A stretch of 64,000 bases of DNA from Laetmonice hystrix (Eukaryota), in contig OZ249447.1 in NCBI GenBank assembly GCA_965235115.1, forward strand, positions 23,994,001 to 24,058,000, written 5' to 3'. A model generated the notes under the pieces. That model was not told the origin of the DNA and did not search any database. It worked only from the letters and a program-made list of their open reading frames with translations. Shown in pieces: positions 4,301 to 63,891 of this stretch. A program made the translations under genes and the position numbers. How positions within the stretch are numbered: the stretch's first letter is position 1; each line of letters begins with the position of its first letter.

Positions 4301-7300
4301 GGGGACCCCGTTGATCGCCATGGAGACCGCCCCGGCGACCGCCCTCTTCCAACCTTTTTAGGTGTGGAATCTGGAGTCTTGACTAATGTTTTTCCAAACC
4401 TCTTCTCCTCCCCTGACTCCATGTCACTAGCAAGGGGACTATCAGAAAACTCATATGGATCAACTTCTGGGTCCACTTTGTCAGTCTTAGGGCCAGACAC
4501 AGCTGGAAGTCCTCCCTTTGGACTTGTTCCCCCCGCAGGTGACATTTTAGTTGCAACAGGTGTGCTCGCTGATGATTTTCCACTTAGAAGCTTTTTTTCT
4601 TTCTTAGCCTTTTGTGATTTATTTACATTCTTCTTAGGAACCTCAACAGGCTCAACCGAGTGTTCTGTCTTCTCTTTTGTTTCCTTTTCTTCTGTCTTTC
4701 TTTTCTTTGCCTTTGAAGACTTTTGGGTCTGTTTGCTGTCTTTCTTAGGGCGTTTCCTCTTTAAGGATTTTGCTGGTAAAGTTTCAGCCGTTTTTGCCTC
4801 AGCTTCATTCTTTACTGACTCTTCCACATCATCTTGTGTTTTCTTTTCTTCCTCCAATGCCTTCCGGTTCTCCTTGGCCCTCTCCTTCATCTGTTCTCTC
4901 AAAGCCTTCTGTTTTTGGAGTTCTGCAAATTCAGTTGGGTGATGCTTCTTCATATGCCACTGAAGAGAACTTTTCTGTCTGCAAGCAAAATCACACAGCT
5001 CGCACTTGACTGGCTTCTCGTTGGTGTGGAGTCGGTAATGAACCTTGAGGTTATCTCGATGTCGGAATGCCTTCCCACAGTCAGGCCAGTCACACTTGAA
5101 CTTGCGGTCCTCTGCAACGGGAATTGAGATCCTTTCTGCAACTGCCATAGACACATTTGATGTTTTAAAAATTCTACTTCTGGTCTTAACCTATCTTCTC
5201 TTTTGTGGTCATTATTAAAGGAAACTTGATAATGTTAAGTTATCCTAAAGTGCCCAATAACTAGAAAACTGGGTGACTGGGACTCGTCACTTTAAGTTAT
5301 TATAACATTCAAATTTGTCATGACATTATTTTGAATGCATAACATTATGGATCCATTATATTTTATAACTCAGAAGATGGCAATACAGGAGTTTCTCAAA
5401 ACTAGTTCACTCAAATCCCGCTATGCGCCACCACGGCTGAAAGCCCACTTTCCGCTAGTGAAACAAGTTTCCCTTATTTGGTATTCTTGTTGCATAGCAA
5501 ACCTTTCTGCCAAATGCTTTCATAATTCCCTCACTGTCCGGCCATGAAGCCATGGCTCCGGAAGAAGCAGCGACTGCAGACGACTCAGCACACATGCGCA
5601 GTGACTGGTGCCGCCGAGTGGGCTTTGCATGAACTAGTTTATGGAAACCCCCCTATTAAACCATGATAATTCGCACATTAGTGTGTCTTAAGATTCTGAG
5701 TCAGTCTGTTTGAACATAAAAGACATCTATTAAAACATTATTTACTAGTAGATGTCGAATACAGGGAAAAAATTGGTCCTGACCAGTTTTCAGTGATGAA
5801 AATCTACAGTGTACAAAATCTACACACAACAGAAGAAAAAAAAAAAAAGAAAAAAAGAGTTACAGCTCGGGGCGATACAACTCACCGTCAAATCAGTTAA
5901 CCACTGATGAAAGGGACATGATACGAATCGCGATACACAGGGCTCAGTACACATTTGATAACAAAAATTACCATTTTGAAGAAATTAATAAATTCCAAGT
6001 TCTGCACCATATTGCGTTTTAAAGAAATGACAGTAGAGCAACATCTGTAGACCTCAAAACTGGACAAATAGTACTTCTTTACAGTACAGAAAGTAAAGAA
6101 GCATAATATTGAATTGTATTGTAACGGTAGCCTCTGTATGATGATACGTATCATAGTGTGAGAAAATGTATCATCACAGCCCTAGTTACAACCTTATCTA
6201 ATACTACAGCACAACAGTTATATTTGTGACATCCTCTTTTGTGCATAGATCACCACCTATTTTGAATTTATGGGTGTAATCTACTTATTGGTCGTGTCTG
6301 GGGGCAGTCGTAGCTCTATACCTGAATGTGTTGCCTGGTGTCTCTGTAGATGGGAGTTCTTGAAGAACTTCTGGTCACAGCCAGGATGAGGGCATGGAAT
6401 GTTGCGTTCACCCATACCGTGTACCTCTTGTTGATGTGTGTTCAACTTGCCAGCTGTCTTGAATGCCTGACTACATCCATCCATTTCACACATGATTGCA
6501 CGATCCTGATGCGTCTTCATGTGGTCTACGAGGTAGCGCAGCAACTTGAAAGACTTCCCACACTGGCTGCACCTTTAAATATTGAAAACGCCCAAGAATT
6601 ACAATCACTTTAGTTGCCAAGTACCCAAGTCTCCACTAAAGAAGGGATATTTTCTTGGTAAAGGTTTGCCATAACAGCTTTAAAAGGTTGGTCATCAAGC
6701 CTAAAAGTACCCATGGCTATTTATTCATCCCACCTTTGTTTGCAATTTGGGCCTATGATTTATAATCATGAAGACCATAGTGGGATCATAGCTGGATTAC
6801 TTTCCTGCGACAGGGTAGAAACTTACGTGTGCTCGGTGTTCTCATTTGAGTGCAGTCTCTGGTGTTTTGCCAATCCCTCCCGCCCTGAGCAAACTTTACC
6901 ACATGTTTCACATGTCATCTCTTGGAGTGCTGCCTCGCCATGCAATGCTGCTATGTGCTTCTTTACGTTTACCTAAGACAGATGGACAGAAAAAGACAAG
7001 ATAGAACCAGCAAGGACACCAATCCTAAATAAACTTCCCTCACACAGCCTATAAAACCTTACTTTGTATACAACATTTTCCATCCATCAACCATCTGTAC
7101 AGCTCATTGTCATGATTGTTGTCCCATGGACCTGTTTTTTGTACCTGGAGTCAAAACTTACTGCTCAATCTCAAAAGCCATAAGCCTTTCAAGCTTATGC
7201 TTAGTTAGTGACCTTGAGCAGTAACTTTTGACTGGTTCCACCAAAAAACTGGTCCCTGGGCAGTTATTAACCCGCCAAAAAATCCATTGATGCTTACCTT

Positions 7301-9493
7301 ATAGTGACTTCTATACTCGCAAAATTCACAGGAAAATTCCTTCTGGATTGTTGTGTCATGCACTTTCATGTGCAACTTCAGTTGACAGGCAAACTTAACA
7401 TGTTTGCCACACTCTGGACAATTCAAGCCCTTTCCACCTGGTGAGGTGTCTTTATTTGGACTCTCTTCAAGTTCAACAGAGGGCAGGGTATCATCAGAAC
7501 TCAAAGTGTTTACTGCATCCCTTTCCAACTCAACACTTGGGTCCTTGAAGTCTTCAGTAGATTTACTTTCTGTTTTCTTTACAATAATGGCTCCATCACC
7601 TTTCTCTTTACTTTTCATGCCTTCAGGTGTCTTTTGCTCATGTGATTTTCTACCCTTTTTGCCCTTGTCTGGATGCTGTTCTTTTGTATGGGTATCCAGC
7701 TCTACCAATGTTTTGAAGACAGTCTCACATAGACCACATGTAAAAATACCATGTGTTCTTTCATGCTTGCGAATCTGGAATTTCCACTTGTTCCGATAGT
7801 CACACACACTACATTTAAAACGTTTAACACTCTGATCACCTTCACTTTTATCATTAGTCCTGCTGTTGTCATTAGCAGATTTTGCCCCAGCTGAGGTATT
7901 CTCGATACCTGAACAGTCAACTTCAGATGCACCTGTATTGACCTTTTGTGACACAGCTCTTTTACCATCACCTCCATCTGGCTGTAACTTTTCTGTGCCC
8001 TTATCCACCTCAAGCTTGATGTCCTGCAAGGAAGGTTTGTTTTCACTGTCTCCTTGGTCAACTCTCTCCTGGGAATTCATTTGTGCCTTCTTTTTTAATT
8101 TCTTAGGCTTCTTAGGTTTTCCTTCGGTAACTGTACCTTCTTTCACTTTAGATGCCTTATTTTTTTTCAATTTTGTTGACTTGGACTTCACAGACTGGAC
8201 ATCGGCTATCTTGATCATATCCACTGCTTGTTGGGAACCTTCATTTTCTTGGTTGCCATCTTCCAATGGAAGAATTTTTGCCTTTTTATTTTTCTTGGCC
8301 TTTGTTTTCTTTGGTGCACCTTCACCACCTTCTGTTGTTTTAGACTTATGGGACTTTGATGGCTTTTTGGACACTGGTGCATCTTTAATTTCTGAGTCTT
8401 TGAAGGAATCACTGTTCTTGATTTCAGAGGCACCTGCCTTACTTGCATCTTTCTTGCTCTTGGACCCTTTCGACTTTTTTGGTCTGGGAGGCTTTTCTTT
8501 TTCTGTCTTGGTTACTGTGTTAATGGACCCTGAATTTTTTTTGTCACCTGATTTCACGCTATCCTCAGAAGAAGGCCCAGGACCATCAGATATACTTTTG
8601 TCAGATTTACTTTTTTTCTTTCCTTTCTTGAGCTTTCGCACCTCAGACAGGGGCTGGTCACTGTCTTCAGTGTCATCAGACACAACCTTTACTTTAGCCT
8701 TTTTGGGTTTCTTTAATTTTTCAACATCATCCTTCTGAGAAGCTTTTTTCTTTCCCTGTTTGTTGGATGATTTCTCTTTGTGCTCAGATTTCCCTTTAGC
8801 AGTGTCACCTACCTCAGACTTACATGCCCGAGGAGAACTAGACCTCCTCTGTTGGGAAACGTTTTCGGCTTCTCTTTTTTCTTTTCCACTTGCTTCTTTC
8901 TTTACCCTTGGTTTTCTAGGTTTCTTGACCTTCTGACCATTCTCAGGTTCAGTGGCTTCTCCTTTGCTCACTTTTGTTTTCACACCCTTTGCAGTTTTCT
9001 TTGGAGCTTCACTGGGTGTAGCTTCTGGGGACATGGACTCCTCTACAGACTTATCTTCCTTTGAATCAGGAGGCACAGACTTTTCCTTATTCTCAGAGTC
9101 TGCTGAGAGTTCCAACTTTTCCTTTTCTGCAGCTGCACATTTTTCAATGCTGATCTCTAGTGTTGGAACAACTTGCTCTGACTCTTCCTTTTTTTCCACA
9201 GGGGCAGATTCGCATTCTCTAGTCTCACTTTGATCAGCATCCTTAGTCACTTCATCTAGCAACTCTGATCCCAACACATCCTGCTGGCCTTCCTCTAGTC
9301 TTAAAGGAGATTTTGAAGGTGTAGTTTTCCTGGACTTACTGTTAGGGGAATTGTCATCAAGCTGATTTTCAGGTTTCGATTTTTTGGCTTTTCGTACTGG
9401 TGTTTCAATCTCATCAGCCCTGACAACTTTCTTCCTCTTTCTTCCATACAGACTTATGTTAGGAAACTCTTCAATCTCTTTGAATTCATCCAT
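1351..9493 (-). CDS. C2H2 zinc-finger protein, ZFP91/ZNF653/ZNF692/ZNF276-like, about 2117 aa, 10 fingers, long low-complexity arms
   Basis: Exons 9493-7298, 6972-6827, 6572-6322 and 5111-1351 join in frame through GT-AG introns (6354 nt incl. stop). The last four fingers ([48 protein letters not shown]) match the ZFP91 finger series in order (CEMEGC, CPHPSC, AFKSSHNLAVHRMIH, CEICGFTCRQKASLNWHMKKH). An acceptor at 9613/9612 implies a further upstream exon, so the start codon is uncertain. Confidence 0.85.
5387..5654. mobile_element. Small non-autonomous inverted-repeat element (MITE-like) in the ZNF intron
   Basis: Imperfect terminal inverted repeats: AGGAGTTTCTCAAAACTAGTTCA at the left, TGAACTAGTTTATGGAAACCCCCCT at the right. 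Confidence 0.45.
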
Positions 9494-12643: not shown

Positions 12644-33204
<20,561 letters not shown>

Positions 33205-36296: not shown

Positions 36297-37506
36297 AGGC
36301 CTTCAGGCGTAGCTCAGGCGTTTCGGTTTGTGTCAATGGACACGTAGGCCTATATTTATTGTAACCTGGAATGTATGTTCTCTGATGTTGACAGAGAGAC
36401 ATAAAACCATAAATTATGTCGATGCTTCCAAAATTAGGGCCCGATTCCACGACATGTGCTTACAGTCATGTCCTTATTAAATTCCCCGTGGACAGGGAAC
36501 ATGTTTGTCCTGCTCATGTGCAGATCATCCCACCTCTAGCCCAGCATGCCCACAACTGGCCTATATATTGCAGGTCTTCGAATCCACCAGGAAAACTAAA
36601 TCGTTCTCAAACAAGTGTCCATTGTTAAAGTAGTCGCTCTTTAAGAGATGATAGGCCTAAATTCACTTGACACGTTTCCACAGTCATATGCCCGTTGATC
36701 GGTCTTTATGATGACGTATAGCTGGGAGGCAGGGTCGTGAATATGCTAAAAGGTCTTTTTGTATTGACCGCTCGCTGAGCTTTTAACGACTCCTGAGCGT
36801 ATAATTCTCTTTTCTACTGATGTCCTTCCATGATGACCATAGTGAGTGCGACAGGATTAGTAAGCAATAGGTGGGCGTTGTATAGTTCAGAGTAATACAC
36901 TGACTAAGGAATGCACACATGGTTTGCCGTTGGGGGTTGAAGGAGGCAGCATTGTATACCATTTCCTTGCATGCCTAAATACAACGGTCACGAGTCATTA
37001 CTTTGGTTAGCCTGGCTGTCAGGCCATCTGGCGGGTACACTTTTGTTATTACAAAGATCACAGACGGCAAGGACCTGTTGAAAGTCCTTTAACTTTCTCT
37101 ATATATAGCCTGGCCATCGGCTTGTTCCGGCTGGCCGCCGTCGTTGCAGTTATAGAGTAACGAGAAAGTATAGGGCAACATCTGCTCAAGGCATAGATCT
37201 AATCCTATGTCCACTTGGCCTGTGCACTGCCGTATCATTCTATGCACGGACATATAGAGGGGCGTCATGGGGGAATTATTGTGTAAACTTCTAGGCCTAT
37301 AGCCTGCACAATGCTCAACGAATTAATGAACCATTCCCATTCATTGATTATTTCACTAATTTAACTGGGGTTATCTCCACCCTCCACTGTTTAATGATAG
37401 ATCTCTATTGCTCTGATATTGTATCTTTATTCAGGTCCTTCGAACGATCAGCACCATCAACCTTTTCTCAACCCCATTCTATCAACCCGGCATCTGCAGC
37501 ACCAAC

Positions 37507-38782
37507 ATGGCCTGCCTCTGCTGCCTAGAAAAATGCCTCCCACTCGAAGAGGAGAATATCAAGGAAGACCCTTTAGTTGACCTTGAGAAAGCAATCCTCA
37601 AGGTCGCCTGGGACTGCCTCTTGGCCGATCCCCCTGAACAACTTTCCTGGCGGGAACGACTGTGCCCCTTACGTAAAGTCCTCCGGCTAGAAGTAGATAA
37701 ATCATTCCTTGGGTTCGAGCCAAAAGAAATGAAGCTCTTTCCCCAGAACGCCGATCTTCCGGCTACGACGGCGGGACAGACGACTGTGCTCTTTAAAAGC
37801 CATTACCGTAACGACACGGATTCCGTGCAGCACTACTCGTTCAAGACGGAGCGAACGACCAAGTCGTCGGTGGAACTGTCCCTGCAGCGAGGGTTTACCG
37901 TCGGACAGACGCTCGAGGTCGACCTCAAGATACCCAGCGGGGTGCCCGGCTGTGACGTCTCCGGCAAGCTGGGCGGACAGCTCCAGTGGTCATTCCAGCG
38001 TGGCAAGGTTTGCCAAGTTTTAACCTGGACACAAGTGGAAGCGAGGCGGGGGGGGGGGGGTGTTAAAACAAACTATTTATTTACACTCTGCATTATTTAA
38101 GTGTAATAACAGACATATTGACCTATATTTACTTATATATAGATCTATATGTATAATTCTGCAAGTCATCAAGAAAGAGCTCTAACTAAGTCTAACTAGC
38201 CTAGAAAGAGCCAATTAAAGTTAAATCACGTGAAAAGACGCCTTTTCTATCAAAAAGACCCTATCGATTTGCTAATAACCTGGTCCCCCACATGATCTAC
38301 ATTGTCATTCAAATACATTGTAGCCTGTATTTGCTATTGCCGTCTAGATCACCCGCCAGGAGGACCAGGTCATGTGGTCTGTGGACAACCAGGTGGCGGT
38401 AGCCCCCGGGAAGACGGGCGAGGCCCGCCTCAAGGTGAGGGAGTGCCGATGGAAGGCCGACTTCAAGCTGCCGTGTACCATCCGCCCCCGGACCGACGAC
38501 CACAAGATTCCGGTGTTTGTTCGGCGCCGCCGCTCGGGTGACCTTGTCAAGGTCTTTGACGTCTCGTGCTATGACGTAGTGGCGGAATGCGGAGACCACA
38601 TCCGATTGGACGAGCACGACGACGGCGCCATCACGTGTGATCTGCAGGGGGTATGTCACGTGGTGTGCGCCGTAGAACAGGAGGTGTGGTTGCGGGAGGC
38701 CACTCTGCTGCCTCCAGAGGCGGCTATCGAACCACCTATCGTCATCCCTGTGGATGGCCTGGTCAAGGACAAAGGCTCTTAA
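37507..38782 (+). CDS. Aerolysin/ETX-MTX2-like beta-pore-forming protein, paralog 1 (311 aa)
   Basis: Exons 37507-38007 and 38348-38782 (phase 0). Motifs: LFKSHYRNDTDSVQHYSFKTERTTKSS, an alternating amphipathic hairpin GFTVGQTLEVDLKIP...GGQLQWSF, and WSVDNQVAVAPGKT. A 5'UTR acceptor lies at 37434/37435. Confidence 0.75.
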
Positions 38783-40569
38783 CGCAAAAATACTGACTGG
38801 GTGGGGGTGGGGTGGCTGGGATGGGAATCTAAGGGTTGGCAATGATGTGTTGGGTTTCGCTTCGTGTGACGGTTTGCCGTCTCTGGAGCTAGAAGAAACC
38901 ATAGGCTACACACAACCCCCACCCTATCCCATCCTTCCCCTGCCCATCCTATCCCATCCTTCCCCGCCCCATTCTTCCCGACCCACATTACCTCTGCCCC
39001 GTCACACCCTATAGTCAAACGCAGCGAAAGGCTGAGACGGTGCTGACTCTGAGCGGGTATGGGAGTGCATGGTCAGACAGACTTCGTGCTATTGTTTTCT
39101 GCAGCATATTTTTCATGCCTGGTGTAGGCTTATCCACAGATCACGCGTACATTTCTGTGGAAAGCAATAATTAATACGCCACCACAATCGTGAAATAGTT
39201 TGCCTTTATTAACCAACTAGGAGAAGCTAATAACTAAAGTGGCCACTTACAGATAATGTCACCCGGTTAGCTTTATCGGTAGAAAAAGATACTGAACGTC
39301 ACTGAGATTGATAGCGGTACAATGGTGACGTAAATATTAGAGGGTGAGGGTGTGTGGGTTTTAAAAGTTTCCACTGAGATGTTGATTGGGAGCGTGAATT
39401 GGTCGAGACAATGTAAAGGAATTTGAACGAGCTGTTACTGCAGGGTATCAGCGTCAGCGTCACTTTTGTAGTGTCCAGATGCTCTGATTGGTTAATGCAA
39501 AACACACAGGTCGGGTGGGGATTGTGGTGGCTACTAAAATTTCCAATCGACTCGTGATGTACATTGTGTTTATGTATAGTTTCAACAGTTGAACCTATAC
39601 AGTGTGTGCTTGAACTGAATAACTATTTATTTATTATAACATGAAGAAGCCAAGATGGAGCTAAAGTCAGGCATTGGGACTGATGTGCAATACTTATACA
39701 TTTATATCAATTGTAAAGGTTCAATGTAGAGGATTATTGCTTGTGTGATCTGCATGTCTCATATATTGTATTGTAAGAATAAAGAAATACATGTAGGTCT
39801 TTAAATTATTGCATTGATGTAAAGTTAAGCCAAGGCTATACCTTGATTTAAATAAAATATATTTACTTTGCCATCTTCTCTAGTCCTATTTTCAGTCTAT
39901 TGAACTTAAAACTTGTAATTGTGAAACTCGAATTCTGTACTTCTAGATCTGCGTGTCACTGTGTATCGGTTTAAAAGAATAGTACCATGGTTTAACTGTC
40001 TGAATATTTCACAAAACATGTCCAAAACTCCAGCCAACTGTATTTTTCAAATCAAAATCTTGTATTGGCCCAAATCTTTTTCGAGCTGTCCTTTAAATTA
40101 AGTTCTAAAAAGTACAATAATTATATTTCTCGTATGCTGTGCTAAGGGAGAAGATTGCCAAGATGATCATAGTGGCTACAAGAACTGCGCTGTCCTTAGA
40201 CTGAGTCAATTTACCGGATATATGGCTTGTTTGTGTATGTTCGTACTTGCCTTTCCCTACCTGAAATATAACTAAGTCTAGAATTTCTCTAAGTCCATGC
40301 ATAATATTTCAGTCTAGCATGTGCAGTCTAGCAAATGTAAAATAGTAATTTCCGTCAAATCGATTTTAAACATAAAAAACACCATATAAAAACCATCATA
40401 TAAAACACTGACCCCCTAGCTCTCCTCACAGACTACTAAACCATATTAACATTAATCGGTGATTGATTTCCTCTAGGATATATACTTGTCTCCAACCCAC
40501 ACTCATCCACTTCACACTTCATCATGATTACTCACCTTAGAAATCGGTTGGTGTACCTAACCTTACAGG

Positions 40570-41955
40570 ATGGTGGATCTCAACGATGTACATCTAAAAT
40601 TGTGCTTAATGGAATCAGTAATCACTAAATTTGAGGATCTTGCAGCAGTCAAAGGGTTAAACATTGCACACCTAAACGTTAGAAGCCTTGTAGATAAAAT
40701 TGATCAACTACGGATACTACTAAGAAATGAACCGGTTGATATAATGTGCATATCGGAAACGTGGACCAATGACAACCACACAGCTGCCCTTTTGAATATA
40801 CCTGGTTACACTTTAAACTTGCAAAACCGGGCTCCCACTGACGTCAGAGGTAATGTTCAGAGGGGTGGTGGTGTTGGTGTTTATGTCAGATGTGATTCAT
40901 ATCTCACAGTGAACTCATTGGCGGACCTTCATGTGTGCGATGACGATATCGAATGTTTCTGGGTGGATATTATATACAAGTATTCTAGCTCTACAATTTA
41001 TAGACCCCCGGCAGGGTCTTCCAAACGATGTCTAGACGTTTTGCATGAAATACTCAATCGCATCCCGCAAAAAATGACATAATGTTGTTTGGCGATTTTA
41101 ATATTGACTACATGAAAAGCGATAGCAGTACAAAAAAAACTAAAGAACTTTGCGCGGGAAAAATCACTAAAGCAGATCATCAAAAAACCCACTCGAATCA
41201 CTCTCAGAACAAGTACAATTATAGATCTAATACAGAGTGGGACATTACCCTGTGGTATTAGTAACCATAGCATTATATTTGCTGTGAAAAAGAAAACGCC
41301 ACCCAAGCGTGAGAGTGCAACGTTTAAAGGCAGAAGTTATAGAAGTCTTGACACCAACAAATTACAAGCTGACCTTTCGGCCTTGAATTGGACGCCTTTC
41401 TATGAATCATCTGACCCTGCGACTTGTTGGGATATCATGCTAAATAATATATTAGGCGTTGCAGACCGTCAGTGCCCACTTAAGGAATTCAAAATAAAAA
41501 ATGTAAAATTACCTTGGATTAACAATGGCCTGGTCGAAATGGTAAATGACAGGGATAGTATGCAGAGAACATATGAACAGACAAAAGATCCCGCTGATTG
41601 GCATACTTATAAAAGACTGAGAAATGAGGTAATAACAGGGGTGCGCATTGCTAAACAGGACTTCACTATAGATAACCTAGAAACAAAATGCCGATGACCA
41701 TAAGAAATTCTGGAAACAAATAAATGAACTATTTCCTCGGTCTAACTCACATAGTACTATCCTTAAACTCGTTGATCAAAACGATAAAAGGGAAATTAAC
41801 AAGAATGAAACAGCTGACTATAATCACCTTCTTTGCAAATATTGGCCCTAATTTAGCGCGCTCCTTCAATGAACCATCGACGAGAGATATCACTAAATCA
41901 AACCTAGAACTACCGACCATGACTACTAATGAACTTGAAGTAAATAAGCTAGTTA
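40570..41955 (+). mobile_element. Degenerate CR1/L2-like LINE ORF2 fragment (AP endonuclease plus linker; RT absent)
   Basis: HLNVRSL, CISETW, RGGGVGVYV, IYRPP, a frameshifted GDFNIDY, KPTRIT..TIIDLI, LPWIN and KKFWKQI; multiple frameshifts. Confidence 0.85.
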
Positions 41956-42309
41956 AAGAGATTAGTATATAATATAATTTATATTATATAATGCTATCTC
42001 ATGTGACAGGATATTACTACGGACTACGTCCTGTTCGGTGCTGGTGTCCAAGGTCCCGGCCACCCACCCAAACTTGCCCCTTCCCGCACCCGTATATAGG
42101 CGCGTTTGGCTCCCAAACTTATTACCAAGAGATTAGTATATAATATAATTTATATTATATAATGCTATCTCATGTGACAGGATATTACTACGGACTACGT
42201 CCTGTTCGGTGCTGGTGTCCAAGGTCCCGGCCATCATCCCACCCACCCAAACTTGCCCCTTCCCGCCCCCGTATATATATAGGCGCGTTTGGCTCCCAAA
42301 CTTATTACC
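41956..42309. repeat. Tandem duplication of about 171 bp, two copies
   Basis: AAGAGATTAGTATATAATATAATTT...CCCAAACTTATTACC begins at 41956 and at 42127; the second copy has small insertions. Confidence 0.9.
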
Positions 42310-43376
42310 CTGTCAGACAGACCCATTGCTGTTGTCCAGCAATATCCTGGCAAAACAACCAAGGCCTTCAAAGACCGCCGCTGATCAGTTCCGGTAAGTA
42401 GCTATTCTGATTTTTGGCTCGACTCATCAGGTTTCCAAAATTCATGTCCAGTTTGCTGAAGTATAGGCGTGGGCTACGTTTCTGATAAATCCCCTCCCCC
42501 CCCGGATAATGCAGACGGTTTTGCAGGTTTTTGATTTATTACTTAGGCCTATATTGAATCCCCGACCCCCTCTCTCATGTATACGTTCGACCTCCACCTT
42601 TTATACAAATACATTGTTCTGGTTTATAGAACTACTTCTAATCAATACGCAAATATGTCTGGCCAAATATACACATTATATAGGGGCCTACATCTTGGCT
42701 GGTTCCGCATTCTCCAAGTCATACCAGGTGCGATCAGTCCCCTATCACAGCTGGATGGTAGAAGTCAATCACACTTACACTGCACATTACACAACATTGC
42801 ACATATCAGTGTACGAGCCTCATTAAGAAGACTGCTCCAGGTCCAGCAACACTTCATTGTGCGCCGAACAGCCACACAGCGTCCGAGCCTGGACATATCG
42901 TACACCCCTGTCACTTTCTGCCAGGCCGAAAACACGGCCAAAGGACAATAACATCAGTTTATACGGGACTTTCGCTGTACCTTGTTAATTAACATAATTA
43001 ACCCAACCCGGTACCCGCTGAGGTTACGTAACGTAGCGTCTGGTGTGGCAATGTGTTCTTGCCATTGTCAACTCCTGGGAAACATCCCTGAAATGAGACA
43101 AAGGACCCACGCTCGGCTGTAAAACGTCAGTCCAAATCGGCAACAGATGGCCCGTGGCGGAAACATGCCTGCAGGTGGTCCACTGTGAGGACAGGTGGGC
43201 CGTGCCAAAGCTAATCACATGTCTCCAAGCTAAGGGGGTTAAAAGGCCGAGGTCCAGGAATGTTGGGGTGAAACGACGGGTGAGGGTTGGCAGCAGATTA
43301 CGGGCGGTCACACCGACAGACAGTTTCTCCGCTTTCAGACGTGCGCTCAAAGAGTAAAGGTTGGTACGTTTCTGCA

Positions 43377-43577
43377 TATATATGAGCTCTAATGTATCCC
43401 TGAACGAAGGATAGGATATATATGAGCTCTAATGTATCCCTGAACGAAGGATAGGATATATATGAGCTCTAATGTATCCCTGAACGAAGGATAGGATATA
43501 TATGAGCTCTAATGTATCCCTGAACGAAGGATAGGATATATATATGAGCTCTAATGTATCCCTGAACGAAGGATAGG
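43377..43577. repeat. 40-bp minisatellite, 5 copies
   Basis: Unit TATGAGCTCTAATGTATCCCTGAACGAAGGATAGGATATA at 43381, 43421, 43461, 43501 and about 43543. Confidence 0.95.
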
Positions 43578-43615
43578 CAAATGTTCATCTGCATTAAGGT
43601 GAGGCAAAGTGAGAT

Positions 43616-43757
43616 TTAAGGGCCAGATCCACAGACCAATTTACCGCCGATTTTGCGATACGGCCGATTTTTCTCCATGGTTTTCCTCTGGAGAAAAATG
43701 GAAATCGGCCGTATCTCAAAATCGGCCGTAAATCGGTCTGTGGATCTGGGCCTTTAA
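43616..43757. mobile_element. Palindromic MITE flanked by TTAA
   Basis: TTAA-GGGCCAGATCCACAGACC...GGTCTGTGGATCTGGGCCT-TTAA. Confidence 0.7.
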
Positions 43758-43997
43758 GGCCGCGACACATATGCGACTTGTTGTCGGCCGTTCTGTCGGC
43801 GCATCTATCGCTTGACTTGTCGCAGCAACAGGAAAATATTCAACATGTTGAATATTTGTCGCTGCATTTGTCGGGCCAAGTTACGACAAGTCAAGCGACA
43901 GAATTCCTGGCGACAGCCAGGACACACTAGTCGGCAACAGAAGCGATAGCCGTCACTTGTGTTATCGGCTGAAAAAATCGCATAGGGTGTCGCGGCC
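43758..43997. mobile_element. MITE with GGCCGCGACAC TIRs (PIF/Harbinger-like), abutting the previous element
   Basis: GGCCGCGACAC...GTGTCGCGGCC with T/A-rich flanks and internal CGAC/GTCG subrepeats. Confidence 0.65.
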
Positions 43998-44440
43998 TTT
44001 ACTATTACAATACTCATCAAGGCAATGGATAATGGAGTGATTCTTTAAGTTAAAAGAAAGCTACAGGAAAAGTACCAAACATGGAGGAATCTGCATGTCC
44101 TGTGGGTAACAAACTTCCATCTATAAGATGGCCGTCAGAGACAGATTGGTTTCGGGGTTAGGCCTATAGGCAAGGCAGTCGCGGGACCGCACTCTTGCCC
44201 TCAGGGCATGGTTTCGAGGTGTAGCGGGGCACACATGCCGCTCCAACACTAATACTCACCTGCCACTTAAACTAGTAAATGAGGCATGTCTCATCTTCGG
44301 CACGTCTCATCTTCGGCATATAGTCTGCAGGTCTGCACTGTATACTATACATAGGAATTTACCGTTTTCTGTTTTGCCTTAATTTGTTATTAAATCAGTG
44401 CATCTTTTCGTTTTTAGGTACAATAGACTGTAGCATCAAC

Positions 44441-45978
44441 ATGGCTTGCTTCTCCTGCCTAGAGAAATGTTTACGGCCTCTAGATGTTGATCTCCGTGAA
44501 GATCCCATGGTTGACCTGGAGAAGGCGATCCGCACGGCGGCCTGGGAAATCCTGGACGCTGACCCCCCTAAAGCCCTAACATGGCGGGAACGGCTGAGCC
44601 GTAAACGTGGTATTCTCCGACTGGAGGTTGACAGATCCTACTTCTCAGTGGAACAATCAGGTGAGATGGAATTCCCTCCGGACCACCGCACGAAACCCGC
44701 CAACGGAACGACACCAGCACCACAAACTCTTCATAATGGAGACCCCGCAAATATTACCATTGATCAGACAGAAGAGACGGAACTACTTCCACAACAAGCC
44801 GAACTCCCTGATGCGCAGGTAACCGAGGAGACTGTAAGTCGTAAATTCGCTGACGTGGTGAAGGTGGTAGGAGGGCCGACCATACTATTCCAAAGCCGTT
44901 ACAAGAATGACACAGATTCCGTACAGCACTACTCGTTTAGGACAGAACGTTCAACCAAGTCATCCGTTCAGATATCACTTCAAAAAGGATTTACCTTGGG
45001 AGAAACACTGGAGCTTACCTTGGCTACACCTGACCTGAACCTGGGAAAGCTTGGAGGAGAATTGAAGTGGAGCTTCCAGCGGGGCAAGGTAGGAGATGAA
45101 CCCAAACTCTGACAAAAACATGTGTTTATAATATGTCACATTGTCGCTTGAAAATAACAAACGGCTACACCTGTTATATATAAATACATGTGGTATTATA
45201 ACAATCCCCATCAGCTCCGGCGTTCGTTCCTCTCAGAACGAACGCCGGGGCTGTTCGTATTGGCTCCCGATCTCCCACCCCCTACACAATTACCCGTTAA
45301 TTAATCCTGAATGCTAAAAATCAACCCTCGAGTGCCAAAGTATACAGCACATGTTCGAAGTTCCGCGGCTGCTCTTGCTTTGTGCGGACTTTTTTTTTTT
45401 TTTGGGGGGGGGGGGGGAGTCCTATTGGATCTGCCGCTGTGTCCTCCCCCCAACCTATAAGACGGGTTGTGATATTAGGGTTAATCGCTGGCTGTCTTAT
45501 TTAGGCCTATAATTTGTGATATAATGTTTATTTTATATCTTTTTGTCACTCATGTATTATTTCACTGCCCCTCCAGGTGACGACTCGCGAGGACAACGTC
45601 ACGTGGTCTGTCGACAACCAGATAGCCGTTCAGAAAAACAAGACAGGTGAAGCTTTTCTCCAAGTCACCGAGCGCCGCTGGCAGAACGAGTTCACTGTGC
45701 CCTGTACCGTCCGCCCCCGCACGTCTGACCACACCTTCCCTGTGTTCGTTCGCCGGAAGAAGTCCGGAGATCTAGTGAAAGTCGTCCATGTTACCTGTTC
45801 GAGCGTTGCCCAAAAATGCGGCGACCACATCAAAGCGAATGCAGCAGACGACATGATCACGTGTAAAGTTCGCGGGTTTGTCCGCGTGGTGTCAGCAGTG
45901 GAGCAGGAGGTACGCCTCAAGGAGGCCAACATGGTGCCCCCCGAGACGACACCTAGCGAGAGCGAGCGGCACCAGTGA
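44441..45978 (+). CDS. Aerolysin/ETX-MTX2-like beta-pore-forming protein, paralog 2 (349 aa)
   Basis: Exons 44441-45088 and 45577-45978, with the same phase-0 intron after FQRGK as paralog 1. It shares NDTDSVQHYSF.TER.TKSSV, WSVDNQ and VFVRR..SGDLVKV. A 5'UTR acceptor lies at 44417/44418 and a candidate non-coding exon ends at 42393 (CCG|GTAAGT). Confidence 0.75.
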
Positions 45979-53100: not shown

Positions 53101-56100
53101 CTGCTGGTTGGGTTCCTTCCACGGAGAGCGTACAAGTATAGTGAAGCTATTGTATAGGCGTGCAACAGCCACACACTCACATTTTAAACGAAATCTCTTG
53201 GAAAAGGGGGACCATAGTCACAATATTCTATTCATTATTTGGTATACCGGTAATACTTCTATATCGTTGTAAAATACTTGATGAGGAAATTTTTGATTTT
53301 TCTTTGAGAGTATTTTTTTCTCTTTGAAACAGATACTAGTAGTTCACACAAAAGGGGCAATGCCTTGATGTAGAGGCACGGGCCACTGGAGTGAGCGCTG
53401 GGGAAGCTTGGCAGTGGTAGATTCACGCACTTTGCCTTCATCACGTACTTTCCCAACCGGAACTTATACAAAATGACGTCACAGTAAACAGTAAACGTTC
53501 AGCCCGCCACTTACTGCAATGATTATAACAGGTCCCTGGCGACTCTAACAGACTGACTGTATTATACAATAATAATACATGGACAGCCAACGAGCACCAA
53601 TGGCTATCAGGATACTCGGATGCCAAATACACTGCTGTCACAAAGGCTCCCATCCATCTCAACAAAAGCTTTTAAACCAAAAACACTGGGATTCGTCCAA
53701 GCTTGTCCAAACCAACCAGGGCTGATGCCAGTACACATTCTCGTCTATTATAACCATATCTAAGTTGATAATCTTGGCAGCTTTGGTCTCTCTGTGTACC
53801 CTGGGACCATGCATACTTATCTGTTACTGCCGAGTTTCCACAACCATACGTTGTTGTATAGCTGAATACCAAAATACATAATTGAGGCCCAAGACAGGTT
53901 ATTGGCTGAGTGACTTCAAGTGTAAGATAGGGTTGTTTATAACAAAGCCAGAGTGATACGTCGGATATCACCAGGTTATACCATGAAGTTGTGGGCCCCA
54001 TGTCACGAGTGCAAGATCCGCTCCAGTTTGACCAATCGTACAACGCCGTGACAAGGATCGCCATGTCTTAATACGCCAGCACTCACACAACTTACTATAA
54101 ACAGTTTGTGAGAGCATTGCACTGGCCATTACGATGTAGGCCTATAATTAATTGTTATACAGAACTACAGCGCTGGAATATTACACTTTCGCAAGCTGGT
54201 TTCAATATCAAGCAGGTTGCTTCCTTTGCCCTAAAGGGCCTACATAATGAAAAAGGAAAAAGCAACCGGTTCAGTATTAATAAATCGGAGGGCCCAACGG
54301 TCGTTTTCCCGCTAAAACAGCTCGTGACGCCCAACCCCGGAGAATGGATTCCACCTTACTGTTTCTACAACGGTATCTGACGTCATCCTTCTATCTCAAT
54401 GGACACAGACTGTTTTCAATACAAAGGCGTTGCTGTGGATTCTAAGGTGCATACCAGCCACACACCACCACAGATTATTATACCAAAACTAATACTTATA
54501 AAAACGCCAACTCTACATTAACTACTTACCTTGTGCACCAACCACATTTGAGTATAGTATCAAACTGTGGCAAAGAATCAAAGTCGACTAAAAACAATGG
54601 GAACTCCTTTGTGCACGACTCATGACCAATAAGCCGAGGGCCATACTGCTTCTTGAGCGTGCCGTACCACTCCATGACCTCCTCGCGGTTGGTGTAGTCC
54701 ACCCGACTACCGAATAATTCATCTTTCCATTGAAACACCTGCTCCTCGTTACCGAAATTGCGCAGTTCGGTCAAAATCCGACCTATCAAATCTTCCATGT
54801 CATCTATGTTCTGAAACTCGTCGCCACCTGTGTTTGCTGACGACAGAAACAAGCACCAAGGGTTTACACGTCATTCGTGCTGTTATAGAAGTGCCGCGGC
54901 GACTGCCCAACGGGCCGTCCGCAATACTGACTGACATCATAGTGAGTAGTAATTGCTACAGCATGCAGGTAGAGCAGTTGGTGTACTATGCACACCTCCC
55001 TGCGCAAGGAAGCAGACGTTTTGCATGGTTGCCTTATCTCCAAATTTTGTTCGAAAGGAAATCTATTGACATACAAGGACACACCAAACATTCCAAGCCA
55101 AGGTCAACACGAACTGGGGCCGATGAATAATTAACCCGCGCAAATAGCCATAATTAGCGCAAATAATTTTTACATTTGGATGTTCTTATGAAGCTCTGAT
55201 CACTAAATGTATCGGTACTCAAGCGGCCAAACATATTATACAGTTATAGGTTTATACGTTATGCGTTTTTCCGCCGAAGGTCGGCAGCACAGCAAACTTA
55301 AAGCTCAACTTTTTAAACAAAAATTACCAGGACAGATATCTCCACCACCTCACTTCAAACATGTTGATTCTGATATTTCGTTTTGTTTTCGCATTGTAAA
55401 ATTTAAAGGGCAGCTTTTAGGAGGGGTTTGAAGGTTGGTGGAGGTATAGCTTTGACAGCGGAGGGGAACATACGGACACCACTGAGCAGAGAAAACACTT
55501 ATATACATCCATACGGTGTGCATGGTCTTCATCTAGACTCTATCTTTCCGTATCTGTATTGTTGTGTCACCCCGTGTAGAAATAAGTGAACCAAAGTTAT
55601 AAACCGAAATGAACATGTCAGAGGTAAAACAGGAATAGTGAGGAAGTCAACTTGTGAAAGAAAATTTAAATAACGAAGGTGTTAACGAAAGGTAAATGAT
55701 ATGTGTTACTGTCTCATATAGTGCTTCACCCAGCCACCCTTCATTTAGTAGACTGCTACAGAACTAGCTCCTGCTCGACGACCTGCTGGCAAGGTTATAA
55801 AGATCATTCAGAGAGACAGAGCTACAAGACTGCATTCATGGAAATATCATGCAACATAAAAGTACTAAAAGTACAAACAAGGAGATTTTGGGATTAAATC
55901 AGATGAAATTAAAAGCCCAGCAGAAGGGGCTGTCCACATATTAATGGAGTTGGGCGATTGAGGTATCCGGGATTGTTGATTATGACTTTCAGACAGAGAC
56001 TGAGAGAAAAAGCAAGCCAACATCCCACAGAAACAGCCATGGAAACAGGGAGGTATACAACCATGTAGAGCTGACTCAAACATCACGGCGGGCCGGTGCT

Positions 56101-59100
56101 GACCTTCCGTCACCGCCGAAGGTCATCACGCGGAGTCGCGAAAAAAAAATTAATGTTGTGTTGGTGATAAGGCAAGATGCAGATACTGCAATACTATATG
56201 ATGTCAGGTTTATCAGATCGTGGAGGCCCCCGTGGTTTGGTTGAACATGATGGGAGGTAAGAGACGGGTATGAGTGTTGTGTTCTCTAGACAAGGCGCGT
56301 TATGTGATGAACGTAATGAACAATGACTGTGACGAGATGGGGGGTCAATGGTGAAGAGTGAGATGAGTGGTGATATGTAACAATGGTGTTTATGAGCTTC
56401 ACCCTGAGCCACATACTGGAAATACAATCTCCATGCTAGACACCTCAAGGAAGCAGTTTTCCAGTAGGAACTAAAACAACGGTTCATGATGATAAGCATG
56501 ATGGTGCTGCTGAAAAATGATCAGGATGTTGCAGAACATGAGCGTTTACATTCCAGTAAAAAGAGAAGCTTCGTTTAGTGAGAGGAAGAGCCGCCAGGGG
56601 GCAGCCTGTGTGCATGGATGATACTCACTTAGTTGTGTTCACACACTGGTCCTGGCACTGGATGGTTCCAGAACTCGGGAGGCCTCGCAGATCAGCCGAG
56701 AAGAGAGATAGGCTATTTATGCACTCCTCATGACCAATAATGTGCGGCCCGAACCGTTTCTTGATATTCTTAAACCACTGCTTGATGGCAGAATCTGGCT
56801 GCCTGTCCATGATCATCTCTCGCCACTCATTCACCCACATGCGGATCTGATCCTTGTTGGCAATGGGGACCAATTCGTTAAAGTCAGGCACGTATTGGTC
56901 ATAGTAGTCATCGGTAGGCTTGCCAGTACTGACTGGATCCGAGTAATAAGGCGACTCTTCGGACTGATTGCCTGTGAAGCACATACGGTAAATGATCGAG
57001 ATACGATCAACCACCACCAATGTCGGGGGCAAGGAGTCGCCCCCTAGTGGCGGCCATGAAAGTGGCGCCACACCAGCCACTTCCGAGGAATCCCACGTTG
57101 GGCACAGGATTACAAAGGGACTTGTACGGAATGAGAAATAGAAAGGGCAATGAGAGAGAGAGAGATAGAGAGAGAGAGGACATCTGGCTTAGCTATAAAA
57201 GGTTACAATGTTATACAACAGCAACCACAATACCGAGGGACTGACACGCTCCTCTTGGTTAAGGGAATATACACAATCTGAGGACGATTTTCACCATCTA
57301 CCATAATAATATTTTTCAGGTTTCCCTCCCCAAACCTTCACCACTCTACCATGGACACTTCCTTCAGCCAATTTCTTGAACATGCTTACATGAAAAGGTA
57401 TGGGATTTAGCACCCCCCCTTTTTTGCCGCTGATCTAGGATTGCTATACGTAGAGACGCCTTCCCCTACAATCCTGGATCCGCTACCATGAAAGACCATG
57501 AAGCATAACAGCAAAACTATGATATGGCCTGATCAAAATGATACTGATACTGGAACGCGAGTGTTCAGTAAAATGTGCATTGTATTTAGTACTCTCGTCA
57601 ATGTATCGTGAAGCCTGTTCTACTCTGCTGCACCATTTCTTGGTTTATCACCCTTTTATTATACGAATATGAAACCTGGATTTTAACTGCAGAGAAGTTG
57701 ACTACGTGACGGCTCGTACATGATATACTTTTGAAAACAATGATAAATGACGAAAGAGAGTAAGAGATAGGCAAGACAATGACTTTGCTAGCAGGCCTAA
57801 TGTCAGAAAGAAATCCTATCAAGAGATATTCTGCTGCCTAGGCGGTGTGGTCCTTGTGAAGGTTCCCGCCCGAATCTCCTGCCTACCCCCACCCGTACTA
57901 CACTCCCGAACGATGCCCCTTAACACTCAAGGCTAATGGCTGTAGCCTACAAGAGTGCCTCCTTAAAGGCTGCAGAAAAGCGTCTAACATCAAAGACAAC
58001 CCCCTGGATCGATCCGCAAGCAGGTGGACAATAGCGTTAATGCCTAATCCCCAAGGACAGGGGTAGAATGGCAATCAAGCTCGCTCCACAGCTCCACAAG
58101 TTTATCATGAGGATGGTACCAGCTGACGACTTTCTCCACACGTCCTCGGGTCCCTATGTTCCTCCATTGTTCGTCTAGTCTTCTCTTTTAAATTTCTTTT
58201 CGAATAATATGTTAAATGATCCTAATTGAATGAATGAGTAAGAGAGGGGAACAACACACATGGGCCTTTGATTACAATACAATGCGCATGTTACTTAAAG
58301 GAGAAAAGACCAGGCGTCAAGAGTAAAGTATGCTTATAATATAATGACAGATATGTCACGTACTTGGAGCGAACCTTTAAAGCTGAGATGCAGTGCCCGA
58401 GCGTTAGAGAAAAGATGATGGTAGGGAGACAGAAGGATGCGGATGGCGACATACAATGAGAAGGAGTCAGAGAATGACTCAGCAAGATGAAGCAGGCACT
58501 GTGCGAAGAGCAGGTATCACACTCACAGCTTCACCCTCGTACTTCATCTGCCACTCTGACTGACCGCAAGCCGCACAGCATGCACGAGATATCACAGCCG
58601 CAAAACCAGCACCAGTCTAGTCCGTACTTCAAGCCATTTCGTAAGCCACTACAGATAAAAGGACTTTACAAACTCAGGCTTTCTGGCAAAGCTAAGCCAC
58701 CTAAACGTAAAAAAGGCCATGCCAAACTCACTCTTTTTATGATATGATTAGAAAGTTGTAATTAGAGGCCAAAAGCTTTGTCCAAAATAAAATGTGCATT
58801 GATTGGACGCAGTTCGCCTGAACAATCGAACATAAAGTAATCTGTGGCAGGGGAAGATTATCTCTTATTTCACATATATATTTTGTTTTACCATCCGACC
58901 AGCTGTCCGTTGATCTGTGGTCACAGTTTTAAAGTTCATGCTGACCGCCCACGTCTGGTGTTATTTACGCATAAACTGAACAATTTGGCTGCTATCTACA
59001 GAACGCAAACAGAGCTAATGTGAAACCAAATCCACCACACATATACACACGTCTGATTGCACACCTCGCGAGATTTCTGACAATCACCTAGCAGCGCAAC

Positions 59101-62100: not shown

Positions 62101-63734
62101 TGAACCTTCATATAAATATAAATGTAAATCTCAGGTCATCGTTTTTGTTACAGGGAATAGTGCACGGAGTTTTAAACTGAACCTTCATATAAATATAAAT
62201 GTAAATCTCAGGTCATCGTTTTTATTACAGAGAATAGTGCACGGAGTTTTAAACTGAACCTTCATATAAATATAAAAGTAAATCTCAGGTCATCGTTTTT
62301 ATTACAGAGAATAGTGCACGGAGTTTTAAACTGAACCGTCATATACCCTCTGACCGGATACCTGTCTGGCAGCTGAGAAGGCTTTCACTGATCTGAGATA
62401 ATAATAGGTTGATACTTACATCTATAAATAGGGACCGTGCTCCTGACCCTCCTCTCACCCAGATTTCACATATTCCTTGGTAGTCGTACATTTGTATTCT
62501 ACAAATGAAGAAGAGAACATGAACTCTTACGGTAAAATACAATAAAATATTAGATCGAATTCCGCAAACATTACTCTCAATATACTATGAATATTAACAC
62601 GCTCTCCTGAAATATATCTACTGTTTATTGACAACTCATATACCGGTAAGCCAGAAATAAAGGCTGCCAAGAATGACATGGTGTTGAAGAGATAAAAGGC
62701 TGCCAAGACTTAGTCGACGTTGAAGACACCTACCTCCTAAAAACCCCTTTCTTAATGCCCATACTATCGGCCTCCTCATGTTGGATAAGTTCCTTCATTA
62801 ATGTTCCATCCAGCTCCCCAAAGAATTTACCAATCTGCAACATAGAGATTTGATGTGGACGAGATTCGTTTCAAATTCACGACAGCCGACGTATGAACGT
62901 GGCTACGTACAGTTGGCACCTCTCATTGTCTCTCTGTCATCTGGTTCAGGTTGGGCACACCGCACAGAAACGTAGCAGGTCATATTCAAATGAGCGTAAA
63001 TTGTTGTTCATGCCTGCATACACCTTATTCATTACCACTTCACATTTTCTAAATACTGTTTGCTAAAAAATCGATCTAGGACTTACCTCGCCTTGGTTCT
63101 CCGACAAAACCACAAAGCCATTGTTATCAAGGAGATAACAATCAAGCTCCTGAAGCCAAACAAATTATTGATATCACTGTTAATGAAACAACTATAGAAA
63201 GACATGTTGATTGACCTTAGTCACACCAACAAACATACAGCAAACATGTCAACATACAAAACCTGTCAACAAACATACAGCAAACATGTCAACATACAAA
63301 ATCTATCAACGCAAAATGAGCAAAACATATCACCGCAAAATGAGCCAGCTGAAACAAGCTCGCACAATTTGACTGTTGAAGTTGCCGATAAATTAATCCT
63401 CGTACACGCAGAAAATTCCCCTCTTGATCAGGTATCGACCTTAGTTATGACCGCATACATCAAAAGTCGACCAATGGCAGTGTGTTAAGACAGTATTAGA
63501 CGATAAATGCCAAGGAGTCTATGAAAGATGATTTACGTACAGCACTTTCACAAGTCATGTTACACGGAGCGTCCTTGAAGGGGCAGACTCTCGTCTGGTT
63601 GATGAAGAACTCGTAGAACTTGTCGTATCTCATCTGGAGACCGACGACGGCAGCCACCGCCTCCCGGCCCTCCTCCGAGATGATGATCGGTGAACTGGCT
63701 GTCACCACCGTCTTGTTCCACTCCGACTCATCAC
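50104..63734 (-). CDS. CACNA2D: Voltage-gated calcium channel alpha2delta subunit, 3' part (gene continues beyond the window); CACNA2D3/4-like
   Basis: Exons in frame: 63734-63541 (AAVVGLQMRYDKF...CNMTCES), 63149-63087 (ELDCYLLDNNGFVVLS), 62834-62734 (IGKFFGELDG), 62498-62420 (QMYDYQGIC), 61788-61736, 61436-61378 (FNFFSWWHGD), then 56971-56629 or 54836-54530, then 51047-50935 (TNLMLLAVDAQCYC), 50655-50573 (CQRLQQDIYRKRPDECHSYH), and 50199-50104 (EDATHCG plus a hydrophobic GPI-type tail). Confidence 0.93.
50656..50934 (-). other. U12-type (minor spliceosome) AT-AC intron, 279 bp
   Basis: Donor ATATCCTTT (50934-50926), branch CCTTGAC (50671-50665), acceptor CTAC ending at 50656. Removal restores the frame (KIEY-NDTMTC). 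Confidence 0.92.
54530..54836 (-). CDS. alpha2delta alternative exon C (alpha2/delta junction, 307 nt, phase 1 to 2)
   Basis: Acceptor TTTCTGTCGTCAG, donor AG|GTAAGT. Encodes ...WYGTLKKQYGPRLIGHESCTKEFPLF...LKCGWCTR, which resembles the delta N-terminus (PCDTEYPAF...CEDCSK). Confidence 0.8.
56629..56971 (-). CDS. alpha2delta alternative exon A (alpha2/delta junction, 343 nt, phase 1 to 2)
   Basis: Acceptor GTGCTTCACAG, donor AA|GTGAGT. Encodes ...WFKNIKKRFGPHIIGHEECINSLSLF...QCQDQCVNTTK, paralogous to exon C. Confidence 0.8.
57640..58060 (+). mobile_element. Highly degraded RTE-like LINE 3' remnant
   Basis: Short peptides LLLYEYETWILTAEKL (compare LLYGSETWTLT) and RWTIALMPNPQG; broken by stops. 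Confidence 0.3.
59340..59405 (-). CDS. Candidate 66-nt symmetric (phase 1-1) cassette exon of alpha2delta
   Basis: Strong pyrimidine tract TATTTTGTGTTTTGTGCCTGTGTAG and donor A|GTAAGT; reads EPLHHHIHTRHDDWLHTAESKQ in frame. Confidence 0.5.
61928..62337. repeat. 77-bp minisatellite, about 5.3 copies, in an alpha2delta intron
   Basis: AGTGCACGGAGTTTTAAACTGAACC... recurs at 61928, 62005, 62082, 62159, 62236 and 62313. Confidence 0.95.
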
Positions 63735-63891
63735 CTACAACAATGGACAACACTGGCGTCAACTGTAACTTCACCTACAGCAATGGACAACACTGCCGTC
63801 AACTGTAACTTCACCTACAGCAATGGACAACACTGGCGTCAACTTTAACTTCACCTACAGCAATGGACAACACTGGCGTCAACTGTAACTT
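63732..63891. repeat. 40-bp tandem repeat, 4 copies, overlapping an alpha2delta splice acceptor
   Basis: Unit CACCTACAGCAATGGACAACACTGGCGTCAACTGTAACTT at 63732, 63772, 63812 and 63852. Confidence 0.92.

Follow-up and report, generated by a model that had tools for sequence, protein, structure and literature searches.

Nematode LIN-24 is the sole member of its branch of ETX/MTX2 proteins with genetics, although where it resides, what it binds and how it is built have yet to be established (PMC12945463). The glabralysins of the snail Biomphalaria glabrata are mollusc ETX/MTX2 proteins, and their best structural relatives are Cry23, Cry45 and Cry51 (PMC7016736). We analyzed a 64-kb stretch of DNA from Laetmonice hystrix (contig OZ249447.1, positions 23,994,001 to 24,058,000 of the forward strand), hereafter the window, to which all positions refer and in which two genes, A and B, were predicted from the DNA letters alone. 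We consider it likely that A and B are tandem LIN-24-like paralogues of the ETX/MTX2 family that form pores and that are probably acyl-anchored at the cytosolic face of a membrane.

By sequence, LIN-24-type proteins of nematodes are the closest to A and B. They belong to the same homologous family, carry an N-terminal V-D-x-D/E...Y-A-W motif and an ETX_MTX2 core and, like A and B, have no signal peptide. However, they are only about 23-25% identical to A and B, most of them have no cysteine-rich leader, and their genes contain several introns, unlike A and B. The glabralysins are the closest in kind, a likeness that concerns domain and structural neighbours alone: their Cry relatives are also the top matches here, but their genes comprise 4-5 exons and are found on different scaffolds (PMC7016736), whereas A and B have 2 coding exons and lie in tandem. 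The same fold is found in Cry23Aa1, Cry51Aa1 and Cry45 of Bacillus thuringiensis (Mpp-type) and in Clostridium perfringens epsilon toxin, with template modelling (TM) scores of up to 0.69 to the model of a family member, P0007. These toxins share the layout of long strands flanking an amphipathic insertion hairpin. They are only 12-15% identical and are secreted or crystal toxins, often proteolytically activated, whereas the animal genes contain introns, and their products have a conserved helical module at the N-terminus, preceded by a cysteine-rich leader, and lack an export signal. Vertebrate Dln1/natterin-like proteins and BmALP are eukaryotic aerolysin-fold proteins without classical toxin roles; they carry lectin or beta-gamma-crystallin N-terminal domains, in contrast to the short helical domain in the ETX-type head of A and B. 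A and B are thus additional members of a known invertebrate family, and the signal-less, cysteine-rich N-terminus is their unusual trait.

The gene models are as follows.

37507..38782, + strand: gene A, 311 aa in 2 coding exons, ATG at 37507
37507-38007, + strand: gene A exon 1, coding
38008-38347, + strand: gene A intron, GT..AG, 340 nt, phase 0
38348-38782, + strand: gene A exon 2, coding, stop codon at 38780-38782
44441..45978, + strand: gene B, 349 aa in 2 coding exons, ATG at 44441
44441-45088, + strand: gene B exon 1, coding
45089-45576, + strand: gene B intron, GT..AG, 488 nt, phase 0
45577-45978, + strand: gene B exon 2, coding, stop included

A and B are intact neighbouring genes with uninterrupted frames. 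Their introns occupy an identical position, directly after matching conserved residues, and a relative at locus L001 is interrupted by an intron at this position too. Intronless open reading frames (ORFs) at loci L002 and L003 matched A without a break over the exon junction (tblastn), which validates the splice model of A. An earlier reading made from the sequence only had described two paralogs of 311 and 349 aa, each with two coding exons and the same intron position, and had judged them roughly half identical. The gene models bear out this description, and the overall identity by BLASTP was 49%. Polypyrimidine-AG acceptor-like sites lie at 37424-37433 and 44411-44417, just upstream of the ATGs of A and B; because of their position before both start codons, each gene may have an extra non-coding 5′ exon.

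Relatives of A were collected by an exhaustive HMMER search of 1.8 billion representative proteins, in which A exon 1 matched 122 proteins, including P0007 with an E-value of 4.9e-11. B exon 1, used as the query of a word-indexed protein search, gave no match. Public assemblies contained no record identical to the exon-1 ORF of A. The closest matches (P0001-P0005) were exon-sized ORFs that were 59-65% identical to A exon 1, and further relatives were full-length proteins of about 300-450 aa. Six of the ten full-length relatives scanned exceeded the gathering score (22 bits) of Pfam ETX_MTX2 (PF03318), at 24-43 bits (P0007, 40.4; P0020, 42.7; P0012, 32.1; P0013, 29.5; P0026, 32.0; P0017, 24.3), and precomputed annotation places the domain in many more relatives.

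The predicted exons of each gene, concatenated as they stand, were aligned pairwise to these relatives. Joined A matched P0125 over residues 7-289 (E 1.2e-33) and P0007 over residues 10-289 (E 2.5e-33), both across the exon junction, and both relatives are intronless. With P0007, P0125, P0020 and P0013 (Capitella teleta), the E-values were 1e-28 to 1e-33 for A, over residues of about 5-297, and about 1e-24 to 1e-25 for B. When a conserved column was defined as a residue common to ≥60% of 56 family members, A retained 28/36 and B 29/36 of such columns, including an invariant Asn and a near-invariant Gln and Gly. The Ser/Thr-rich strand, the alternating hairpin and the W-x-V-D motif that had been read from the letters are present in A, in B and in their relatives. 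By these alignments, A and B are full-length homologues of bona fide ETX_MTX2 members. One relative, P0006 of the nematode Oesophagostomum dentatum (164 aa), carries the conserved core twice in tandem, query residues 79-147 matching its residues 17-84 and again 96-160.

The kinship with LIN-24 that had been proposed earlier was upheld by the family profile. A search with this profile recovered nematode ETX_MTX2 proteins with E-values of 1e-52 to 1e-75, among which two annotated CRE-LIN-24 proteins, P0220 and P0228, matched strongly (4e-61 and 1e-52, respectively), and other nematode matches were annotated as 'Cry15Aa' or 'ETX/MTX2 domain-containing'. Compared directly, A and B matched the LIN-24-annotated proteins with E-values of about 1e-13 to 2e-14. 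A V-D-x-E/D...A-W motif near the N-terminus is common to nematode and spiralian members and to A and B. Sequence comparison thus places A and B in a LIN-24-like branch, the link being made through annotated orthologues in nematodes other than C. elegans, and the nearest named relatives are LIN-24-like rather than biomphalysin-like.

The named members comprise molluscs (Lottia, Haliotis, the chiton Liolophura, a cuttlefish and four scallops), annelids (Capitella and Helobdella), the nemertean Lineus and many nematodes. By sequence matches, then, the family is protostome-wide and was already known in invertebrates; the proposal that it is lineage-specific does not hold, since members occur in molluscs, annelids, nemerteans and nematodes. 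The introns of the genes and the broad protostome distribution of the family led us to reject a recent horizontal transfer.

The assignment to the aerolysin/ETX-MTX2 fold, also made in the sequence-only reading, agreed with the passage of relatives over the PF03318 threshold and with matches of both the family profile and the P0007 model to Cry toxins and epsilon toxin. Searched against PDB sequences, a profile of 56 family members matched Cry23Aa1 (2.6e-11), zebrafish Dln1 (2.4e-8) and Cry51Aa1 (5e-8), as well as LSL and epsilon toxin (8e-3). The AlphaFold2 model of P0007 had a predicted local distance difference test score (pLDDT) of 87 and a predicted TM score (pTM) of 0.79. With this model, Foldseek returned Cry23Aa1 (E 1e-13), Cry51Aa1 (8e-13), Cry45 (1e-11; TM 0.58/0.69) and epsilon toxin (5e-10), and also parasporin-2, Mpp75Aa1, aerolysin, Dln1, lamprey immune protein and LSL. 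By proxy of the P0007 model, A and B are predicted to adopt an elongated multi-domain beta-sheet fold.

The P0007 model contains a loop at 118-160 enclosed by two very long strands, E97-121 and E161-177, and the predicted insertion hairpins of A and B align with this loop.

37891..38007, + strand: predicted pre-stem amphipathic beta-hairpin of A, aa 129-167, aligned with P0007 residues 118-160
44987..45088, + strand: predicted pre-stem hairpin of B, aa 183-216, with a tip shorter than that of A

Both segments show polar/apolar alternation on both arms, and in both genes the end of the predicted hairpin coincides with that of exon 1. Judged by this pattern, aa 129-167 of A and aa 183-216 of B carry the usual signature of an insertion hairpin, and the hairpin segment cited in the sequence-only reading falls inside it.

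A and B shared 172/348 identities in BLASTP (49%, E 4e-116) and were 58.5% identical over 294 ungapped columns. A translated search of the 64-kb window found only A and B and no third copy. At the DNA level, the match between the two genes was confined to the conserved coding core (37774-37917 versus 44870-45013, 71% identity); the duplication is therefore old. Synonymous sites were saturated, with a synonymous rate (dS) of about 1.8, and the ratio of nonsynonymous to synonymous rates (dN/dS) was about 0.19 over 294 codons. Both copies are maintained under purifying selection. Pseudogene status was rejected on the basis of the intact frames and this ratio.

These values also bear on whether A and B could be unexpressed relics or annotation artefacts of a repeat-rich interval. 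Transposon fragments do surround both genes, but the frames are uninterrupted, the splice sites are canonical and stand at a position common to the L001 relative, the family-invariant residues are kept, and the low dN/dS was obtained with dS saturated. We regard this explanation as extremely improbable.

Neighbour joining on the exon-1 region grouped A with B as sisters (68% bootstrap) within a clade of close relatives; because of this pairing, the duplication itself may be lineage-specific. In the trimmed exon-1 alignment, B was 49-55% and A 65-72% identical to close relatives, so that B is the faster-evolving copy. B also differs from A by an insertion.

44648..44875 (bounds approximate), + strand: B-specific insertion, Pro/Thr/Glu/Gln-rich, about 54 aa relative to A

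From the gaps in the A/B and family alignments, the insertion follows the N-terminal module and precedes the first long strand, and it maps onto a lower-confidence loop (64-77) of the P0007 model. The faster evolution of B, its disordered 54-aa insertion and its shorter hairpin would fit a division of labour in which one copy, most likely B, has lost pore formation and regulates the other. Such regulation between aerolysin-family paralogues has a precedent in toad BmALP3, which restrains BmALP1 (PMC7995273). B nevertheless retains 29 of the 36 family-conserved columns and the amphipathic hairpin, and we consider a regulatory role of this kind improbable.

The sequence-only reading had raised a heteromeric two-component pore, for which we found no support. 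An obligate A-B heteromer would be in keeping with the same-strand tandem arrangement, with the intactness and purifying selection of both copies, and with the distinct linker and hairpin tip of B. However, each copy has every part of the single-chain architecture seen in family members that form homo-oligomers, tandem duplication by itself accounts for the pairing, and the related L001 locus has a single copy within +/-10 kb, the second copy of that assembly lying on another contig. Obligate heteromerisation is therefore very improbable in our judgement. The second homologue in the L001 assembly (L004:7698-11378) aligns with A and B as five disjoint segments, which would reflect either extra introns or damage. 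Elsewhere, around P0003 (ENA ERZ26222911), same-strand ORFs of about 166 and 130 aa recur over 13 kb; judged from ORF sizes alone, which fit exons 1 and 2, this contig suggests a tandem array of at least 3 copies.

Both proteins begin with a short leader ahead of the conserved N-terminal motif.

37507..37575, + strand: leader of A, aa 1-23, four Cys in the first 12 residues, no signal-peptide core
44441..44509, + strand: leader of B, aa 1-23, three Cys in the first 12 residues, no signal-peptide core

The leader of A stops at the conserved V-D-x-E...A-W motif. Hydropathy was measured as the best 9-residue window within the first 35 aa, and by this simple test, which is not a trained predictor, a signal-peptide-like hydrophobic core was found in neither A nor B nor any of 50 N-terminally aligned relatives. 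A peaked at 1.56 and B at 1.08, acidic residues occurring from position 8 onward, and the family median was 1.28. Among 69 members with leaders of >8 aa, Cys made up 6.8% of leader residues versus 1.5% elsewhere (odds ratio 4.8). Cys occurred within the first 10 residues in 48/69 leaders, two or more Cys in 28/69, and Gly2 with a nearby Cys in 5/69. Palmitoylation of a cysteine cluster, and myristoyl-Gly combined with palmitoyl-Cys, are the classic contexts of N-terminal lipidation. Since the leaders are enriched in Cys and a signal peptide is missing, lipid anchoring is suggested.

The same features bear on the secreted alternative, in which A and B would be extracellular immune or venom-type toxins, similar to biomphalysin or of the kind proposed for glabralysins, that are released to lyse microbes or parasites. 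Their fold family is that of known cytolysins, immune effectors are typically duplicated, and in snails an immune challenge elicits a response from ETX/MTX2 genes (PMC7016736). Against release through the classical route stand the missing signal peptide in A, B and the 50 aligned relatives, the conserved cysteine-rich leader placed directly before a conserved, cytosolic-looking N-terminal module, and the LIN-24-like rather than biomphalysin-like identity of the closest named relatives. Read from the N-terminal residues, the missing signal peptide and the cysteine-rich leader argue against a classically secreted toxin, and we regard the extracellular role as unlikely.

A full-text search found no literature in which lipidation of this N-terminal type is tied to aerolysin-like proteins, and the acylation-type leader is the sole element of the locus that might be new. 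A gene for a DHHC palmitoyltransferase is the immediate upstream same-strand neighbour of an ETX_MTX2 (LIN-24-like) gene in Caenorhabditis bovis, and in C. auriculariae the two are merged in one 717-aa gene model. The loci are L006:1945-11723 and L005:8001-18875, and the flanking genes (FoP_duplication and PRK) are the same in both Caenorhabditis species. This adjacency may be plain synteny within Caenorhabditis, yet it is curious given the cysteine-rich leaders of spiralian members.

Several observations weigh against the acyl-anchored, pore-forming reading, in particular against its anchoring step. The statistic for Cys enrichment counts related sequences as independent and ignores their shared ancestry. 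Most nematode members start at the conserved motif and have no leader. The suggestion that the cysteine-rich leaders mark lipid-anchored cytosolic proteins comes from the motif alone. Several eukaryotic aerolysin-like proteins without a signal peptide are still released from cells. As to the fold, the four exon translations scanned separately gave no Pfam match at E<=10, because the intron divides the ETX_MTX2 domain; A exon 1 and B exon 2, when compared with PDB sequences, brought up chance matches only; and A exon 1 alone, folded with the family alignment, gave a poor model (pLDDT 64, pTM 0.43). The family and fold of A and B are assigned through homology (~30% identity over ~280 aa) and the model of a relative. 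Both proteins are known here from their genes alone, that is, from DNA-level evidence.

Homology, gene structure, purifying selection and the fold of one family member form the established ground from which the acyl-anchored mechanism departs. By analogy with the family, each protein would be an elongated three-domain beta-sheet molecule that exists as a soluble or peripheral monomer. At a membrane, monomers would assemble into oligomers whose amphipathic hairpins swing outward and form a beta-barrel pore. To judge from sequence features, A and B probably stay outside the classical secretory pathway, and S-acylation of the N-terminal cysteine cluster probably fastens them to a membrane on its cytosolic side. 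If the proteins are anchored on the cytosolic face in this manner, their action would be cell-autonomous or would follow cell damage, and their part would lie in regulated permeabilisation of membranes and in stress or immune signalling, not in that of exported toxins. The proposed mechanism agrees with the LIN-24 literature, in which cytotoxic cell death, stress resilience and immune signalling are described (PMC12945463).

A stronger version extends the mechanism to the spiralian branch as a whole. Here the LIN-24-like proteins would be S-acylated, and in some cases also N-myristoylated, cytosolic pore formers that permeabilise the plasma or organelle membranes of their own cell from inside. 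We put this forward tentatively, as a possibility that we would not expect to hold on present evidence. If true, these proteins would be a protostome counterpart, with a different fold, of gasdermin- or MLKL-type executioners, and the tandem pair would represent two differently tuned versions.

The remainder of the window contains the following features.

21430..31439, + strand: WASHC4 (WASH complex subunit 4/7), upstream neighbour, eight ORF pieces with colinear Pfam matches
63499-63774 and 62733-62870, - strand: candidate exons of a CACNA2D-like downstream neighbour, matching VGCC_alpha2 at consecutive profile positions
40570..41972, + strand: fragment resembling a long interspersed nuclear element (LINE), between A and B, with an Exo_endo_phos endonuclease domain (E 4e-8)
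43376-43577: tandem repeat between A and B, five copies of a 40-nt unit, 98% matches
43615-43757: inverted repeat of 56 nt, after the tandem repeat
14011-20056, + strand: BEL/Pao-type long terminal repeat (LTR) retrotransposon with two long ORFs
1351-5154 and 7205-9493, - strand: two very large exon-like ORFs (1267 and 762 aa) with C2H2 zinc fingers
54529-54870 and 56628-57188, - strand: two similar ORFs sharing a similar C-terminal motif block

Of the two conserved flanking genes named in the sequence-only reading, the first stood and the second did so only in part. Pfam matches to WASH-4_N (profile positions 1-38, 96-150, 189-235 and 519-563), WASH-7_mid (316-345) and WASH-7_C (56-175) were colinear, and most of their scores exceeded the gathering cut-off. 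By these matches the upstream gene is confirmed as WASHC4, which ends about 6 kb ahead of gene A. The two VGCC_alpha2 matches downstream were colinear but sub-threshold (13-14 bits versus a gathering score of 22), and a PDB sequence search gave no match. A CACNA2D-like gene convergent with gene B is a plausible, weakly supported candidate.

Surroundings rich in transposable elements had also been described, and transposon-derived sequence is present: the LINE-like fragment between A and B, whose reading frame is broken into several ORF pieces, and the BEL/Pao element at 14-20 kb. The ORFs of the latter are gag-like (DUF1759) and pol, with Peptidase_A17, integrase and DUF5641. The large zinc-finger ORFs also carry long low-complexity, poly-Q and Lys-rich tracts, and their best named match was a Pinctada imbricata protein with 34% identity over 21% of the query. 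The ORFs at 54529-54870 and 56628-57188 look like paralogous exons or duplicated genes, and searches of Pfam and PDB gave no convincing match for them.

Animal aerolysin-fold proteins are numerous and barely characterised. To these, the locus contributes two spiralian members that are intact and divergent and have a clean gene model, and their comparison shows a branch that spans molluscs, annelids, nemerteans and nematodes, together with a cysteine-rich, signal-less leader in its spiralian members. If this leader is an acylation signal, the proteins would work from the cytosolic side of the membrane, which would change how 'toxin-like' genes of animals are annotated and studied.

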